A stretch of 64,000 bases of DNA. It comes from Octopus sinensis (taxonomy: Eukaryota). The stretch spans positions 22,134,001 through 22,198,000 of the forward strand of contig NC_043014.1 of NCBI RefSeq assembly GCF_006345805.1, read 5' to 3'. Shown piece by piece: positions 7,460-31,780 of the stretch. Positions within the stretch are counted from its first letter, which is position 1; the number at the start of each line of letters is the position of its first letter. The notes beneath the pieces were generated by a model. That model saw only the letters and a program-made list of their open reading frames with translations. It made no database searches and was not told the DNA's origin. Made by a program: the position numbers and the translations under genes.

Positions 7460-7862
7460 GTTATTATTTTCTTTCACTTGTTTCAGTCATTTGACTGCGG
7501 CCATGCCGGAGCACCTCCTTTAGTCGAAGAAATCGACCGCAGGATTTCTTCTTTGTAAACTTAGTACTTATTCTATCGGTCTCTTTTGTCGAGCCGCTTG
7601 TTACGGGGGCGTAAACACTCCAACGTCGGTTGTCAAGCAGACATACAAATACATACATATATATATATATATATATATATATATATATATATATATATAT
7701 ATATATATATATATATATATACGACGGGCTTCTTTCAGCTTCCATCTAGCAAATCCACTCACAAGTCTTTGGTCTGCCCGAGGCTATAGTAGAAGACATT
7801 TGCCCTAGGTGCCACGCAGTGGGACTGAACCCGGAACCATGTGGTTGGGAAGCAAGCTTCTT
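7460..7862 (-). mobile_element. tRNA-derived SINE (family A), body and tail; head split by insertion
   Basis: B-box ggttcagtccc (minus strand), conserved ggcacctagggcaaatgtcttctactatagcc body, internal (TA)n and tail cagtcaaatgactgaaacaagt. Head continues at 11250-11284. Confidence 0.9.
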
Positions 7863-8094
7863 CATTTCAAAATATTGGCTATTACAGCCTTACACAGAGG
7901 GGACAGCACAAGGTGGGGACAGCACAAGGTGGGGACACAAAAACAAAACGAATGAAAGGATGAATTAAATATAATGAAAGATGGAATGAAGCCGCTCGGC
8001 CCCCACCTTCGAGCGACTTCATTGAACCTGTTAATACAACCTATTAATACAACTTTTTTTAAACACTAGTTTGTAATACCATTATTGGCGACAG

Positions 8095-9890
8095 CTAATT
8101 ACCATCCCTCCAAAGGATGTTTACACTATGCTTGTTTAAAATGTTATAAAAACTTACTTGTTCAGGCATTGAGCTGGTGTCCAATTTCTTGACCCACCAC
8201 TCATAGCCATGGTTTTCCTCATAGTCCTTTAATCTCGACATATATTCTGGGCCTACCACTACACAGCGAATTTGCTCGGGCACCCCCAATACTCCTGATA
8301 TATCCACTTTTATAACACTGTCCCACGAGTCTATTTCGGTATACAGTTTTTCATTTTCTCCACTGTACCATATAACATGTCTTTTCCAAGGGCAAGGGTG
8401 GGGAAATTTGGGGCTCCTGTGTGCTTGTGTTTGTCGTCATGTCAGGTGGAGCATGGAGAGGGTTGGAATCTCTAAAGAGTGGTTGGGGTAGCGTGGGTGT
8501 GGGTGGGAGTCGGACGGATGTGGGATGGGGGTCGTCATTTACAACACGTGTTCTCTTTTTTCGCTCTCTTCTCTTTTTTCCCGCCGTTTCCCATCCCTTC
8601 TTCACCTCCTCTTCTTCGACGCTGGTACTGGTTTTTGTCTGTGGTGCAGCTTCAATTCCCTTCTTACTCTCGTGCTTCTCTTCAGCCTCCATGGGTGGTT
8701 GAGGACCAGTTTCCTTTTCGTTCTCGTGCTTCTCTCTGGCTTTCACGGGTGTGTGTGTGTGTGTGTGTGTGTGTGTGTGTGTGTGTGTGTGTGTGTGTGT
8801 GTGTGTGTGTGTGTGTGTGTGTGTGTGTGTGTGTGTATGTGTGTGTGTGTGTGTGTGTGTGTGTGTTTTAAAAAAGCCCACTCCAGTTTGTAAATGTTCT
8901 GGGATTTTGCAACTGACCTCCAAAGCATGTAGACATGCTGAACTGAGGACCATACACGACACACAAGCGTCTTGTAACACATCAGCAGGAAACATTAGTT
9001 CAGACATATTTCATTATGGCTGAAAACAATAAAGGAGTAAAACTGAACGAACATAATGGATGATGCAAAGACATTCAAGGAATCTCTCTATATATAAACG
9101 GCAAAATGTCTGTGTGTGTATCCTTTATACAAATCCACAATTTTTCAGTTAGAGGGCTCGCACCTTCTATGGTCATTCAAAACCGTCCAAGAGTGGTCGT
9201 GCACATCTTTACATTTCCCCAGTCACCCCCGCAAAGCCATTCAAAAATCAATAGAAGTGACTTTTTGTGAATTTTCTATCCAAAACCCAATCAAAATGCC
9301 CGAAACTTAATACGCCAATTGAATGCCAACTAGCTGTATGTGATTGGTCGGAGATTTGGACAGTACTCGCGTGTATGTGCGCACGCACGCAGCTGTATAT
9401 GCATGCGCTAGCACTATGACCCGGCAAGGCCGGGTCATAGTGCTAGCGCATGCATATACAGCTAGTATTTAATAAATACTGAAATAATAGTGCTAGTATT
9501 TAATAAATACTGAAATGAAAATGTGGCTTTCAGGCTACATTTATAGCACCACGGAATCCTTCCTACCACTTCTCCGACCGTGATCGTCTCCATCGTGTTT
9601 TTGATGTCTTCTGGGGCCACCTGTACTACCATGTCTAGACTCTGCCCTTGCCAGTTCCTGTGGGGTGTTCTGGCGGCCTGTATGACCACTACTCTCTCCT
9701 TCATGCCTAGCAGTATGGCAGCTACCAACCAAGCTACATCCACTTCTGGGGTATGTCTTCTACCCTAACCTTGGCAGGACGTCTCCCAAGGTATATGGGT
9801 AGAAGCATCACTGCATCAGTTTATAACGGTGTTGCTGAGTGCAGCCTGGCAGTAGCTACCTCCCGAAACTGCACCTCCACTGTTCATTTT
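8095..9890 (-). pseudogene. LINE ORF1 (gag-like) partial copy 2, interrupted at 8740-9520
   Basis: MDVAWLVAAILLGMKERVVVIQAARTPHRNWQGQSL...WCYKCSLK zinc-knuckle start; C-terminal part VKAREKHENEK...YEWWVKKLDTSS. Confidence 0.75.
9083..9465 (+). mobile_element. Non-autonomous Helitron-like element
   Basis: 5' TC(TCTCTATATATAAACGGC), 3' hairpin plus CTAG, inserted between A and T. The empty site ggaa|tatttaataaatactgaa is visible on the minus strand near 6020-6050. Confidence 0.85.
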
Positions 9891-9894
9891 CTTT

Positions 9895-11099
9895 ACCCAA
9901 CAGTCAAAGTCGATGTCTTCCTCATGATTCCTTAATCCCAATAGATCCTCCGGGTTTGCCACCGTACAGTAAATGTCCTCGGGTAACTCCCTCACTCCTG
10001 CTACATCCTCTTTTATCGCTCTGTCCCATGTCTCAAGCTCATTATAATGTTCTTCTTTTTGTCTCTTGTACAATATAACAAATTTATCCAAGGGCCAGAG
10101 TGGGGAAATCCGGGGCTCGTGTGTGCTTGTGTTTATGTCAGGTAGGGCATGGAGAAGGTTGGTGTCTATAGGGAGTGTTTGGGGGTAGAGTGGGTGTAGG
10201 ATGGGGGTCGTCATTTACCACGTGTGTCTTTTTTCTCCTCTTTCTTTTTTCCCGCCGTTTCCCATCCGTTATTCACCTCCACTTCTTCGACGCTGGTACT
10301 GGTTTTTGTCTGTGGTGCAGTTTCAATCTCCTTCTCGTGCTTCTCTTCAGCTTCCACGGGTAGTGGAGAACCAATTACTTTTTCGCTCTTGTGCTTCTCC
10401 TTAGCCTTCACAAGTGGTGGAGGACAATCCGCTCTAACACCGGAATCCTCCCTTCCACTCTAACTCTAAGTGTCACTTCTCCGACCGTGATGGTCTCCAC
10501 CATGTTTTCAGTGTCTTCTGGGGCCTCTATTATGTCTAGGCTCTGCCCTTGCTAGTTCCTGTGTGGTGTTCTGGTGGCCTGCCGGACCACTACCCTCTTC
10601 TCCATGCCTAGCAGTGTGGCAGCCACCAGCCAAGCTACATCCACTTCTGGGAGTATGTCTTCTACCCTGGAAGCACATCTCCCAAGGTACTTCATCGGTT
10701 TTTAACGGTGTTGTTGAGTGCAGGCTGGCAGTAGCTATCTCCCGAAACTGCACCTTCACTGTTCCATACCTTCTTCCCCTTGCAAGGTAGGAAATCCCTC
10801 TTGCCAGACTGGTCTCAGCGCCTTTCCAACTTGGGCTGCTGACACTACTTCAATTTTCTTCGTTGCCACCGCGTAAGTCCTGTAAATTATCACTTTTTTT
10901 TTATTATTTTAAAACTTCTTTGGTGGGGAACACCTTCACATCGTTCCCTTCCCTTTTAATCATTTCCTTGAACCTGTTTAACTCCTTCAGACTCACGTCT
11001 TCAGTTTTTTTCCTTCGCCGCTTCTGCGTAATTTTTTTTTTATCTCCATAGCCTCGTCAATTCTTTTCAGACTTTTCACTAACTCTTCCTCAGACGACA
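9895..11099 (-). pseudogene. LINE ORF1 (gag-like) copy 1
   Basis: Starts MSSEEELVKSLKRIDEAM; contains YGTVKVQFREIA and DVAWLVAA-like segments and KAKEKHKSEK; frameshifted, zinc knuckle deleted. Confidence 0.75.
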
Positions 11100-31017: not shown

Positions 31018-31313
31018 AGTGTTGACACAATTGCCAACATCAACATTGCTCTCTACAAGAGCAGATTTTTCATGAATGATTTCAACCGATATGGTTGAAA
31101 TAAGTATAATTCAAGAGAAAAGGTTTTCCTCTCGCAGAGGACAAAAATAATCAATTTGCATTACCGCAGTCTAAAGTTCAAATCCCACCCCCGATGAGGG
31201 GCGAGACGTATCAACAAAGTCTACAACGTTCGAAATTAATTTTTCCATACAATAATGAAATATAGAATCCCCAAAAAGGGAAACCTATATCTTTTCCTCA
31301 CAACGAGGACAAC

Positions 31314-31386
31314 AGAGCCTACAATGAGAGCCTAGAGCCTACAATGAGAGCCTAGAGCCTACAATGAGAGCCTAGAGCCTACAATG
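31314..31386. repeat. 20-bp tandem repeat (agagcctacaatgagagcct x about 3.6) in LINE 5'UTR
   Basis: Perfect units directly visible. Confidence 0.95.
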
Positions 31387-31740
31387 GCTAAAATTTAATT
31401 TTTTCCACAATAATAATTTGCTCATCTCAAAAACGGGAAGCCTATAATATTTTTCCCTTTAATGAGGATAACAGTTCAAATGCCACCCCCGCTGGGGGCG
31501 GGGCACGACAATAAAGCCTACAACGGCTTTAACAAGTTCAATATTAATAATATTAATAAATTCAATATTAATAATTTCAATATTTCAACAATTACTTTCT
31601 CCCGTCACCGGGAAAAAGCACAAAAATTTTCAAAGTTCACGAAAATATTCAACAATAATTATTCAACAATAGAAAAATTATCCACGTGCAACAACACGTT
31701 TGACTCACCGCCAGAAAAAGACGTCTGTCTTCGACAAAGG

Positions 31741-31780
31741 TTAAGCAAGCTACTTACCACACAGCCACTGCTGCGCCTAT
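31741..31780 (-). mobile_element. 5' remainder of SINE family A head (A-box)
   Basis: Minus strand ataggcgcagcagtggctgtgtggtaagtagcttgcttaa. Confidence 0.9.

Follow-up and report, generated by a model that had tools for sequence, protein, structure and literature searches.

Tx1-like LINEs at a single position in the head of a SINE in Octopus sinensis

Insertion junctions in two SINE copies

Two copies of a short interspersed element (SINE) in a 64-kb stretch of the Octopus sinensis genome (contig NC_043014.1, positions 22,134,001 to 22,198,000; hereafter the window) were found to be split at the same base by retroelements, one of which, element B, is a long interspersed element (LINE), while the other two, elements A and C, retain only a first open reading frame (ORF1). 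Having examined the window and 21 kb of further octopus DNA, we consider it likely that diverged L1-group, Tx1-like lineages integrate by sequence-specific target-primed reverse transcription (TPRT) at this one site in the SINE head. Both interrupted SINE copies lie on the minus strand and each is split after SINE base 22, where the sense strand reads …GGCTGTGTGGT^AAG[T/A]AGCTTGCTT…, the caret marking the split. The features of the two loci, together with the uninterrupted SINE head used as a comparator, are as follows (window positions; TSD, target-site duplication).

11264..11285, minus strand: SINE copy 1, first 22 nt of the head
11250..11263, minus strand: TSD of locus 1, upstream copy, sense AAGAAGCTTGCTTC
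7863..11249, minus strand: element C, 3387 bp, rearranged ORF1-only relic
7849..7862, minus strand: TSD of locus 1, downstream copy, 14 bp
7470..7848, minus strand: SINE copy 1, rest (B-box region, body, microsatellite, tail)
31756..31777, minus strand: SINE copy 2, first 22 nt of the head, GGCGCAGCAGTGGCTGTGTGGT, including the A-box-like TGGCTGTGTGG
31741..31755, minus strand: TSD of locus 2, copy 3, upstream of B, sense AAGTAGCTTGCTTAA
26102..31740, minus strand: element B, 5639 bp, complete but decayed autonomous Tx1-like LINE
26087..26101, minus strand: TSD of locus 2, copy 2, between B and A
24051..26086, minus strand: element A, 2036 bp, ORF1-only (HAL1-like), non-autonomous
24036..24050, minus strand: TSD of locus 2, copy 1, downstream of A
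23601..24035, minus strand: SINE copy 2, rest (B-box-like GGTTCCGGGTTCATTCCC, body, (TA)n/(TG)n, ~180-nt tail ending AAGTAAAAGA)
14383..14544, plus strand: uninterrupted SINE head, target diverged (GGTGGTAAAAAGCTTGCGT, 3 mismatches)

The original prediction had described TSDs at both loci, and these proved exact at the positions it gave. At locus 1 the 14-bp sequence GAAGCAAGCTTCTT is present at 7849-7862 and 11250-11263, and at locus 2 the 15-bp sequence TTAAGCAAGCTACTT occurs in three identical copies at 24036-24050, 26087-26101 and 31741-31755. Elements A, B and C are all on the minus strand and thus co-oriented with both SINEs, and their 3′ ends (…ATGAAATA, …ATGAAATA and …TTGAAATG) directly adjoin the first base of the TSD, so that the predicted orientation and the predicted abutment of the TGAAAT(A/G) ends were likewise borne out. 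In all three complete events the last base of the element adjoins the A of GGT^AAG. The first-strand junction is therefore identical to the base, whereas the second-strand junction differs by 1 nt (14 versus 15 bp), as TPRT predicts. The 5′-junction pattern TGTGGTAAGWAGCTTGCTT was found three times in the window against 0.02 expected from shuffles, and the 3′-junction pattern ATGAAATRAAGWAGCTTGC three times against 0.04. A metagenome scan with the 3′-junction pattern returned >118 matches, none of which continued into a LINE or SINE, and these were taken to be chance matches. Read in the sense direction, locus 2 consists of the SINE head, TSD, B, TSD, A, TSD and the remainder of the SINE, an order characteristic of a target that is regenerated by one insertion and then entered by another.

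When the outer flanks were joined, leaving out the insert and one copy of the repeat, a colinear SINE of ~600 bp was obtained at both loci. The rebuilt SINEs align without a gap at the junction, both with each other and with the uninterrupted copy at 14383-14544, confirming that the two copies are broken at the identical base. They are ~90% identical to each other, and the sequence beyond them is unrelated.

A fourth event was identified outside the window, at an O. sinensis locus (L005, CM016886.1) where an A-like element starts at the same SINE base. The SINE head there reads …GGCATGGCTGTGTGGT AAGTAGCTTGCTT(CC) (also …GGCTGTGTGGT AAGTAGCTTGCTT(CC)) and is directly followed by the element; homology to A sets in after ~105 nt, which fits a full-length copy. 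With 71% nucleotide identity to A, this copy represents a further subfamily. A, B, C and the L005 copy, four events in all, have in common the insertion point, the orientation and the TSD sequence, at GGT^AAG(T/A)AGCTTGCTT.

The target lies in a SINE head with the sense consensus GGCGCAG(C/A)AGTGGCTGTGTGG(T/A)^AAG(T/A)AGCTTGCTT…CCAACCACATGGTTCCGGGTTCA(G/T)TCCCACTGCGTGGCACC, which is followed by a conserved body, an internal (TA)n/(TG)n microsatellite and a ~180-nt tail terminating in …ATGACTGAAACAAGTAAAAGA(ATAAAAGA)n. The window contains nine or more copies or fragments of the SINE. Direct reading of the head revealed an A-box-like motif, TGGCTGTGTGG, and a B-box-like motif, GGTTCAGTCCC, on the basis of which the SINE is likely to be tRNA-derived (SINE2). 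Rfam gave no tRNA match for the head, and ARAGORN reported no tRNA in it at the normal threshold, a cloverleaf being returned at a relaxed threshold only. The target itself reads as a near-palindrome, TGTGGT^AAG-TAGCTTG-CTTA^CC(A)ACCACA, and its GGTAAG/CTTACC arms form the ‘anticodon-like’ stem of the relaxed ARAGORN fold.

Two further features of the SINE family were observed. The copy at 45645-45751 (plus strand), with the head …GAGTGGCTGTGTGGTAA|CCTGTGTCTTC…, has an internal deletion of ~50-60 nt that removes the B-box region and starts 2 nt beyond the LINE nick site; this could be a coincidence or a scar from an aborted insertion or nick. The length of the compound (TA)n/(TG)n tract differs greatly among copies (23782-23905, 7639-7717 and others), and SINE copies hold much of the microsatellite content of the window.

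The inserted elements and their relatives

The coding and untranslated regions (UTRs) of the three elements were delimited as follows (ORF2, second open reading frame; APE, apurinic/apyrimidinic endonuclease; RT, reverse transcriptase; RRM, RNA recognition motif).

30824-31740, minus strand: B, 5′ UTR
30314-30823, minus strand: B, ORF1 open stretch
26312-29652, minus strand: B, ORF2 (APE-RT-zf-RVT), at least 8 frameshifts and 4 stops
26102-26311, minus strand: B, 3′ UTR, ending …GCCTTAATGGCGAATTTTCATGAAATA
24628-25556, minus strand: A, ORF1, one frameshift
10441-10861 and 9525-9885, minus strand: C, two diverged copies of a B-like RRM-type ORF1 segment
9881-10411 and 8178-8746, minus strand: C, two copies of a linker/second domain
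8750-9550: C, foreign material and a (TG)n tract
7863-8177, minus strand: C, 3′ UTR, ending …GGCTGTAATAGCCAATATTTTGAAATG

ORF1 of element B comprises an RRM-like segment and a CCHC knuckle (PF00098, 23.4 bits against a cut-off of 20.8). Its ORF2, of ~1100 codons, could be followed only via at least eight frame changes and readthrough of the four stops. The conceptual product contains an APE domain (PF03372, Exo_endo_phos) at residues 19-225 with a score equal to the cut-off (24.5 bits), and an RT domain (PF00078, RVT_1) at residues 499-731 with 100 bits. The zf-RVT domain scored 25.7 bits, just below its cut-off of 27.5, and its first Cys pair is mutated (…SPTCPRYERDRETVLHAFVEC…). The nearest database relative of B ORF2, the intact protein P0001 (57% identity), has a zf-RVT score of 36.4 bits, above the cut-off, and the ORF2 homologues of B carry both PF03372 and PF00078. 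In comparison with the Protein Data Bank, where the reference LINE groups are L1 and R2 only, P0001 matched human L1 ORF2p with an E value of 3e-50 and R2 proteins with E values of 4e-24 or weaker. Element B would accordingly appear to be an L1-group, Tx1-like LINE, the Tx1 placement being made by architecture and not by an RT tree. A search for ORF2 homologues yielded neither a second ORF2 of the B family nor an intact one, the best match being the 57% relative on a 3-kb contig without a junction.

Neither A nor C contains an APE or RT, as judged by tblastn with ORF2 queries. The DNA shared by A and B is limited to the 5′-terminal 26 nt (CCTTTGTCGAA[A/G]ACAGACGTCTTTTT) and the 3′-terminal 33 nt; apart from these termini there is no DNA similarity among A, B and C. 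An ORF1-only element with B-like termini is the pattern expected of a HAL1-like non-autonomous partner of a B-like element. Element C shows the segment order x-y-x′-…-y′ and is broken up by the foreign block and the (TG)n tract. Within this block, 8871-9016 is 95% identical to 5678-5824, a stretch likewise preceded by a (TG)n tract, and 9016-9083 corresponds to 6105-6039 in inverted orientation, the related region also including 5615-5824 and 6039-6105. A near-perfect palindrome of 73 nt is present at 9391-9463. The foreign block probably represents a further small family of repeats nested within C.

Homology among the ORF1 products was detectable at the protein level, with 41-49% identity between B and C (E 1e-16) and 24-31% between B and A (E 1e-10 to 1e-12). 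The claim that these proteins are homologous yet clearly diverged therefore held, while the YGxVxVQF motif attributed to all three was found in B and C and is absent from A, whose match to PF00098 was weak (14.1 bits). The assignment of the inserts to the L1-group, Tx1-like elements agrees with the APE, RVT_1, zf-RVT and CCHC domains of B and with the match of P0001 to human L1 ORF2p, and the independence of the events is upheld by the lack of DNA similarity beyond the termini and by the fact that the two SINE copies have diverged by ~10%. The account given of the three inserts needs correction in that an ORF2 (decayed) was found in B only, A and C are devoid of APE and RT, and C is duplicated and carries foreign inserts.

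The sole database homologue of A ORF1 is the annotated O. sinensis protein P0063 (LOC115225585; 63% identity), and the copy at this locus keeps ORF1 without an ORF2. ORF1 searches matched only P0063 and P0064, the latter on a 1.3-kb Logan contig without a junction. An AlphaFold model of the P0063 ORF1 built from a four-sequence alignment had a pLDDT of 40 and did not confirm an RRM-like fold of ORF1.

None of the elements ends in poly(A). Instead, the 3′ ends of A, B and C have the layout …TGTAA-(4-bp stem, 5-nt loop)-AAT…(A/T)TGAAAT(A/G), and with those of two further LINE fragments, D and E (described below), they share the layout TGTAA-hairpin-AAU…GAAAU(A/G). The stems of A-D differ by compensatory changes (UGCC/GGCA, CGCC/GGCG, GGCU/AGCC and AGCC/GGCU), which in four sequences are no more than suggestive of a conserved 3′ hairpin; the hairpins are small, and folding z-scores of the A-D 3′ ends were not significant. 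At the opposite end, the 26-nt terminus shared by A (26061-26086) and B (31715-31740) contains the palindrome AGACGTCT followed by a run of T5-T7. A T-run of that length would terminate an RNA polymerase III (Pol III) transcript begun at the upstream A-box-like motif of the SINE.

Two LINE fragments have 3′ ends that were not picked for their location in a SINE, and they are the only such ends in our sample, giving four junction sets in the SINE versus two outside it. Element D (54632..56320, minus strand) is a 5′-truncated Tx1-like RT/C-terminal fragment with 60-64% amino acid identity to P0001 and 46-49% to B, for which no clear TSD was found; a weaker RT-like fragment lies beside it at 56727-57263 (minus strand). 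Element E (L005:5-634) is a B-like ORF2 C-terminal fragment with 54% amino acid identity to B. Both represent other families, which may have other targets or may be a sign of incomplete specificity; in the case of the D family the target may be different and possibly microsatellite-like.

More distant relatives (35-40% amino acid identity) were identified in the ENA assembly ERZ21867824, from another organism, where the corresponding ORF2 cluster has 352 members. These elements likewise show sequence-specific behaviour and are flanked by TSDs of 13-15 bp that share a GCAG…TAG motif, as exemplified by a full-length copy (L001; 15-bp TSD AGCAGCTGTAGTAAG) and a 5′-truncated copy (L006; TSD CGGAGCAGTAGCAGG). 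Three loci (L003, L007 and L127) consist of head-to-tail arrays with a period of ~6.43 kb and units that are 96-100% identical, the 13-mer GCAGAC(T/C)AGAA(G/T)G being present at each array junction and, in L007, also after the last unit. These arrays have the same architecture as locus 2, with tandem copies parted by a single TSD. The L001 copy carries the target-like sequence GCAGACTAATAG at its own 5′ end, which suggests transcripts starting in the upstream target (5′ transduction). No support was obtained for a related SINE head as the target at L001, the flanks of that copy being unique within ~60 kb of that organism's sequence.

Proposed mechanism and competing explanations

Integration at the SINE head would begin with the element-encoded APE-type endonuclease nicking the bottom strand opposite GGT^AAG, after base 22 and 3′ of the A-box-like motif. 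The freed 3′-OH would then prime reverse transcription from the defined 3′ end of the element, which combines a small conserved hairpin with a downstream AAU…UGAAAU(A/G) and lacks poly(A). A top-strand cut 14-15 bp downstream would complete the process and yield the duplication AAG(T/A)AGCTTGCTT(A/C)(A/C) that is seen in the sequence. Both nicks would fall just 5′ of ACCA(CA) on their own strand, a possible reason for the fixed TSD length. As the duplication would regenerate the target, a second element could enter the same site, giving the B-TSD-A-TSD arrangement of locus 2. Elements A and C were presumably mobilised in trans by B-like autonomous elements reading the shared 3′ end, and would thereby have landed in the same target as B. 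Each insertion puts 2-5.6 kb between the A-box-like and B-box-like motifs, an interruption that should abolish the Pol III promoter of the SINE. The SINE may plausibly be regarded as a ‘safe harbour’ for the LINE.

Several observations weigh against targeted integration at the SINE head. The sample is tiny and partly ascertained, since three of the four SINE-site events lie in a window that was chosen for them, and the L005 copy has lost its 3′ side and with it that junction. The B endonuclease is a pseudogene in this copy and its closest relative is only 57% identical. Moreover, the 3′ end of D, …GTAAGCCCTTGTGGCTAATAAAAGAATGAAT (~54632), adjoins AT-rich non-SINE sequence (ATT/TTTA-like) and that of E, …CATAATAAAGAAATA / …GTAACGATTGTATAATCATAATAAAGAAATA (~634), adjoins the non-SINE sequence TGGAGTTAGTTCCCG…, so that specificity would be either lineage-restricted or incomplete.

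The serious alternative is that the elements prefer a short motif, such as T^AAGNAGCT, of which the SINE head is merely the commonest carrier, with no dedicated relationship to the SINE. This explanation differs from targeting of the SINE head in the length of sequence recognised and not in mechanism, and would place most genomic copies at motif-bearing sites outside SINEs. It gains from the location of D and E, from the ERZ21867824 relatives, which occupy unique-looking sites with the loose GCAG…TAG motif only, and from the abundance of SINEs, which account for 11.6% of the genome in O. vulgaris (PMC13282606). Set against this, every A/B/C-type event (four of four) falls within the SINE, with base and orientation identical throughout, while D and E belong to other families (46-54% amino acid identity to B) and their flanks are without the AAGNAGCTTGC motif. 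We regard a short-motif preference as unlikely, while giving it more weight than the two explanations that follow.

The near-palindromic head (GGTAAG-TAGCTTG-CTTACC within TGTGGT…ACCACA) might instead be a structural hotspot, a hairpin that is fragile or prone to nicking and usable by any LINE. The dyad symmetry of the target, apparent from both the sequence and the relaxed ARAGORN fold, fits this proposal, as does the SINE copy whose deletion starts 2 nt past the site. The site is, however, occupied only by Tx1-like elements with the same 3′ terminus, and these show a single orientation, a first-strand junction precise to the base and a TSD of fixed length (14-15 bp), all of which make a hotspot very improbable. 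Insertions that are independent of an endonuclease typically lack regular TSDs. Smaller still is the chance that the events all descend from a single ancestral insertion through segmental duplication, gene conversion or retrotransposition of an interrupted SINE. The identity of all the TSD copies at locus 2 and the local duplication in the window (8871-9016 versus 5678-5824, 95%) would suit such a history. It is hard to reconcile with the fact that A, B and C are dissimilar in DNA sequence save for the two short termini (26 and 33 nt) common to A and B, with SINE copies only ~90% identical, with TSDs that differ in both sequence and length, with unrelated sequence outside the SINEs, or with the L005 copy, a further subfamily at 71% nucleotide identity to A.

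Two other possibilities were rejected. Given one insertion in a 600-bp SINE, three more events sharing its base and orientation would have a probability of ~(1/1200)^3, and chance was excluded. The SINE is also not the 3′-tail partner of the LINE itself, as it ends in …ATGACTGAAACAAGTAAAAGA(ATAAAAGA)n, unlike the hairpin-TGAAATA end of the LINE.

Beyond TPRT at the SINE head, a more far-reaching version may be entertained tentatively, though we think it doubtful. Here a guild of deeply diverged autonomous and ORF1-only Tx1-like lineages would have specialised on one SINE position overlapping the A-box region, which SINE master copies cannot mutate. The endonuclease would cut both strands of the near-palindromic head (TGTGGT^AAG…CTTA^CC(A)ACCACA) at quasi-symmetric half-sites, giving the fixed 14-15-bp TSD. 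Each insertion would kill the SINE promoter, making the LINE a parasite of a parasite with a measurable impact on cephalopod SINE activity.

Relation to known systems and additional features

Target preference is well documented in the Tx1 clade: Tx1L of Xenopus inserts into the piggyBac-type Tx1D and Keno into U2 snRNA (small nuclear RNA) genes (PMC4494074), Kibi and Koshi target microsatellites, and two further families target long terminal repeat (LTR) elements (PMC4494074; see also PMC3747384). The octopus system resembles Tx1L and Keno in involving APE-encoding L1-group LINEs with site-specific insertion into a multicopy sequence; the targets differ. In crocodilians, Mariner-N4_AMi is the target of Tx1-Mar and SINEU-3, with a TSD of 16 bp; tandem insertions that sandwich a TSD were attributed to sequential insertion (Kojima 2015, PMC4494074). 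The octopus system resembles that of Tx1-Mar and SINEU-3 in several respects, namely L1-group, Tx1-type elements with a defined site inside an abundant interspersed repeat, a fixed TSD of ~15-16 bp, TSD-sandwiching tandems and non-autonomous partners on the same target. It differs in that the target is the probably tRNA-derived head of a SINE, between A-box-like and B-box-like motifs, rather than a DNA transposon, and in that the elements end in a hairpin and …TGAAAT(A/G) and not in poly(A). Unlike SINEU-3, the non-autonomous partners carry an ORF1 and are not snRNA-headed SINEs.

ORF1-only non-autonomous derivatives of L1 are found in mammals as HAL1 (half-L1). Element A and the LOC115225585 copy similarly keep ORF1 without ORF2, and A shares only its termini with an autonomous element. 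Unlike HAL1, A is itself site-specific, and its ORF1 is only 24-31% identical to that of the co-resident autonomous element B. The LINEs R1 and R2 are specific to ribosomal DNA, the R2 endonuclease being restriction-like. R2 also receives mention in PMC4494074 and PMC3747384. As with R1 and R2, one target in a multicopy sequence is reused by the octopus elements, and the downstream target may be co-transcribed, aiding precise priming; unlike that of R2, the octopus target is a mobile SINE and not a host gene.

Recent activity of L1-Tx1 elements, comprising 13 families and 421 insertions, has been described in O. vulgaris (PMC13282606), and L1-Tx1 is recorded as ubiquitous in molluscs. The octopus and mollusc L1-Tx1 literature that we searched makes no mention of target choice. 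The mechanism and architecture, the targeting of interspersed repeats by Tx1 elements and the TSD-sandwiching tandems are already known (PMC4494074). The use of a SINE head between promoter boxes as the target, shared by deeply diverged autonomous and ORF1-only lineages, appears to be new. The current understanding of how target-specific LINEs function is left unchanged. Should the pattern hold genome-wide, the SINE head would join the snRNA genes, microsatellites, DNA transposons and LTR elements among Tx1 targets. It would also provide a natural system in which to study how an APE-type endonuclease reads a site of ~15-25 bp, one that combines several diverged lineages sharing a target with a defined 3′ hairpin to be recognised by the RT. 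Octopus annotation would in that case miscount LINE-separated SINE halves as separate truncated SINEs, and the pattern would bear on LINE-SINE antagonism where SINEs exceed 10% of the DNA.

Elsewhere in the window, two ORFs at 19716-20333 (minus strand, 205 aa) and 21694-22080 (minus strand, 128 aa) gave no Pfam match. With a Cys-rich stretch and a ‘KWLSK…’ motif, they resemble parts of a gene of the transposase or zinc-finger type.

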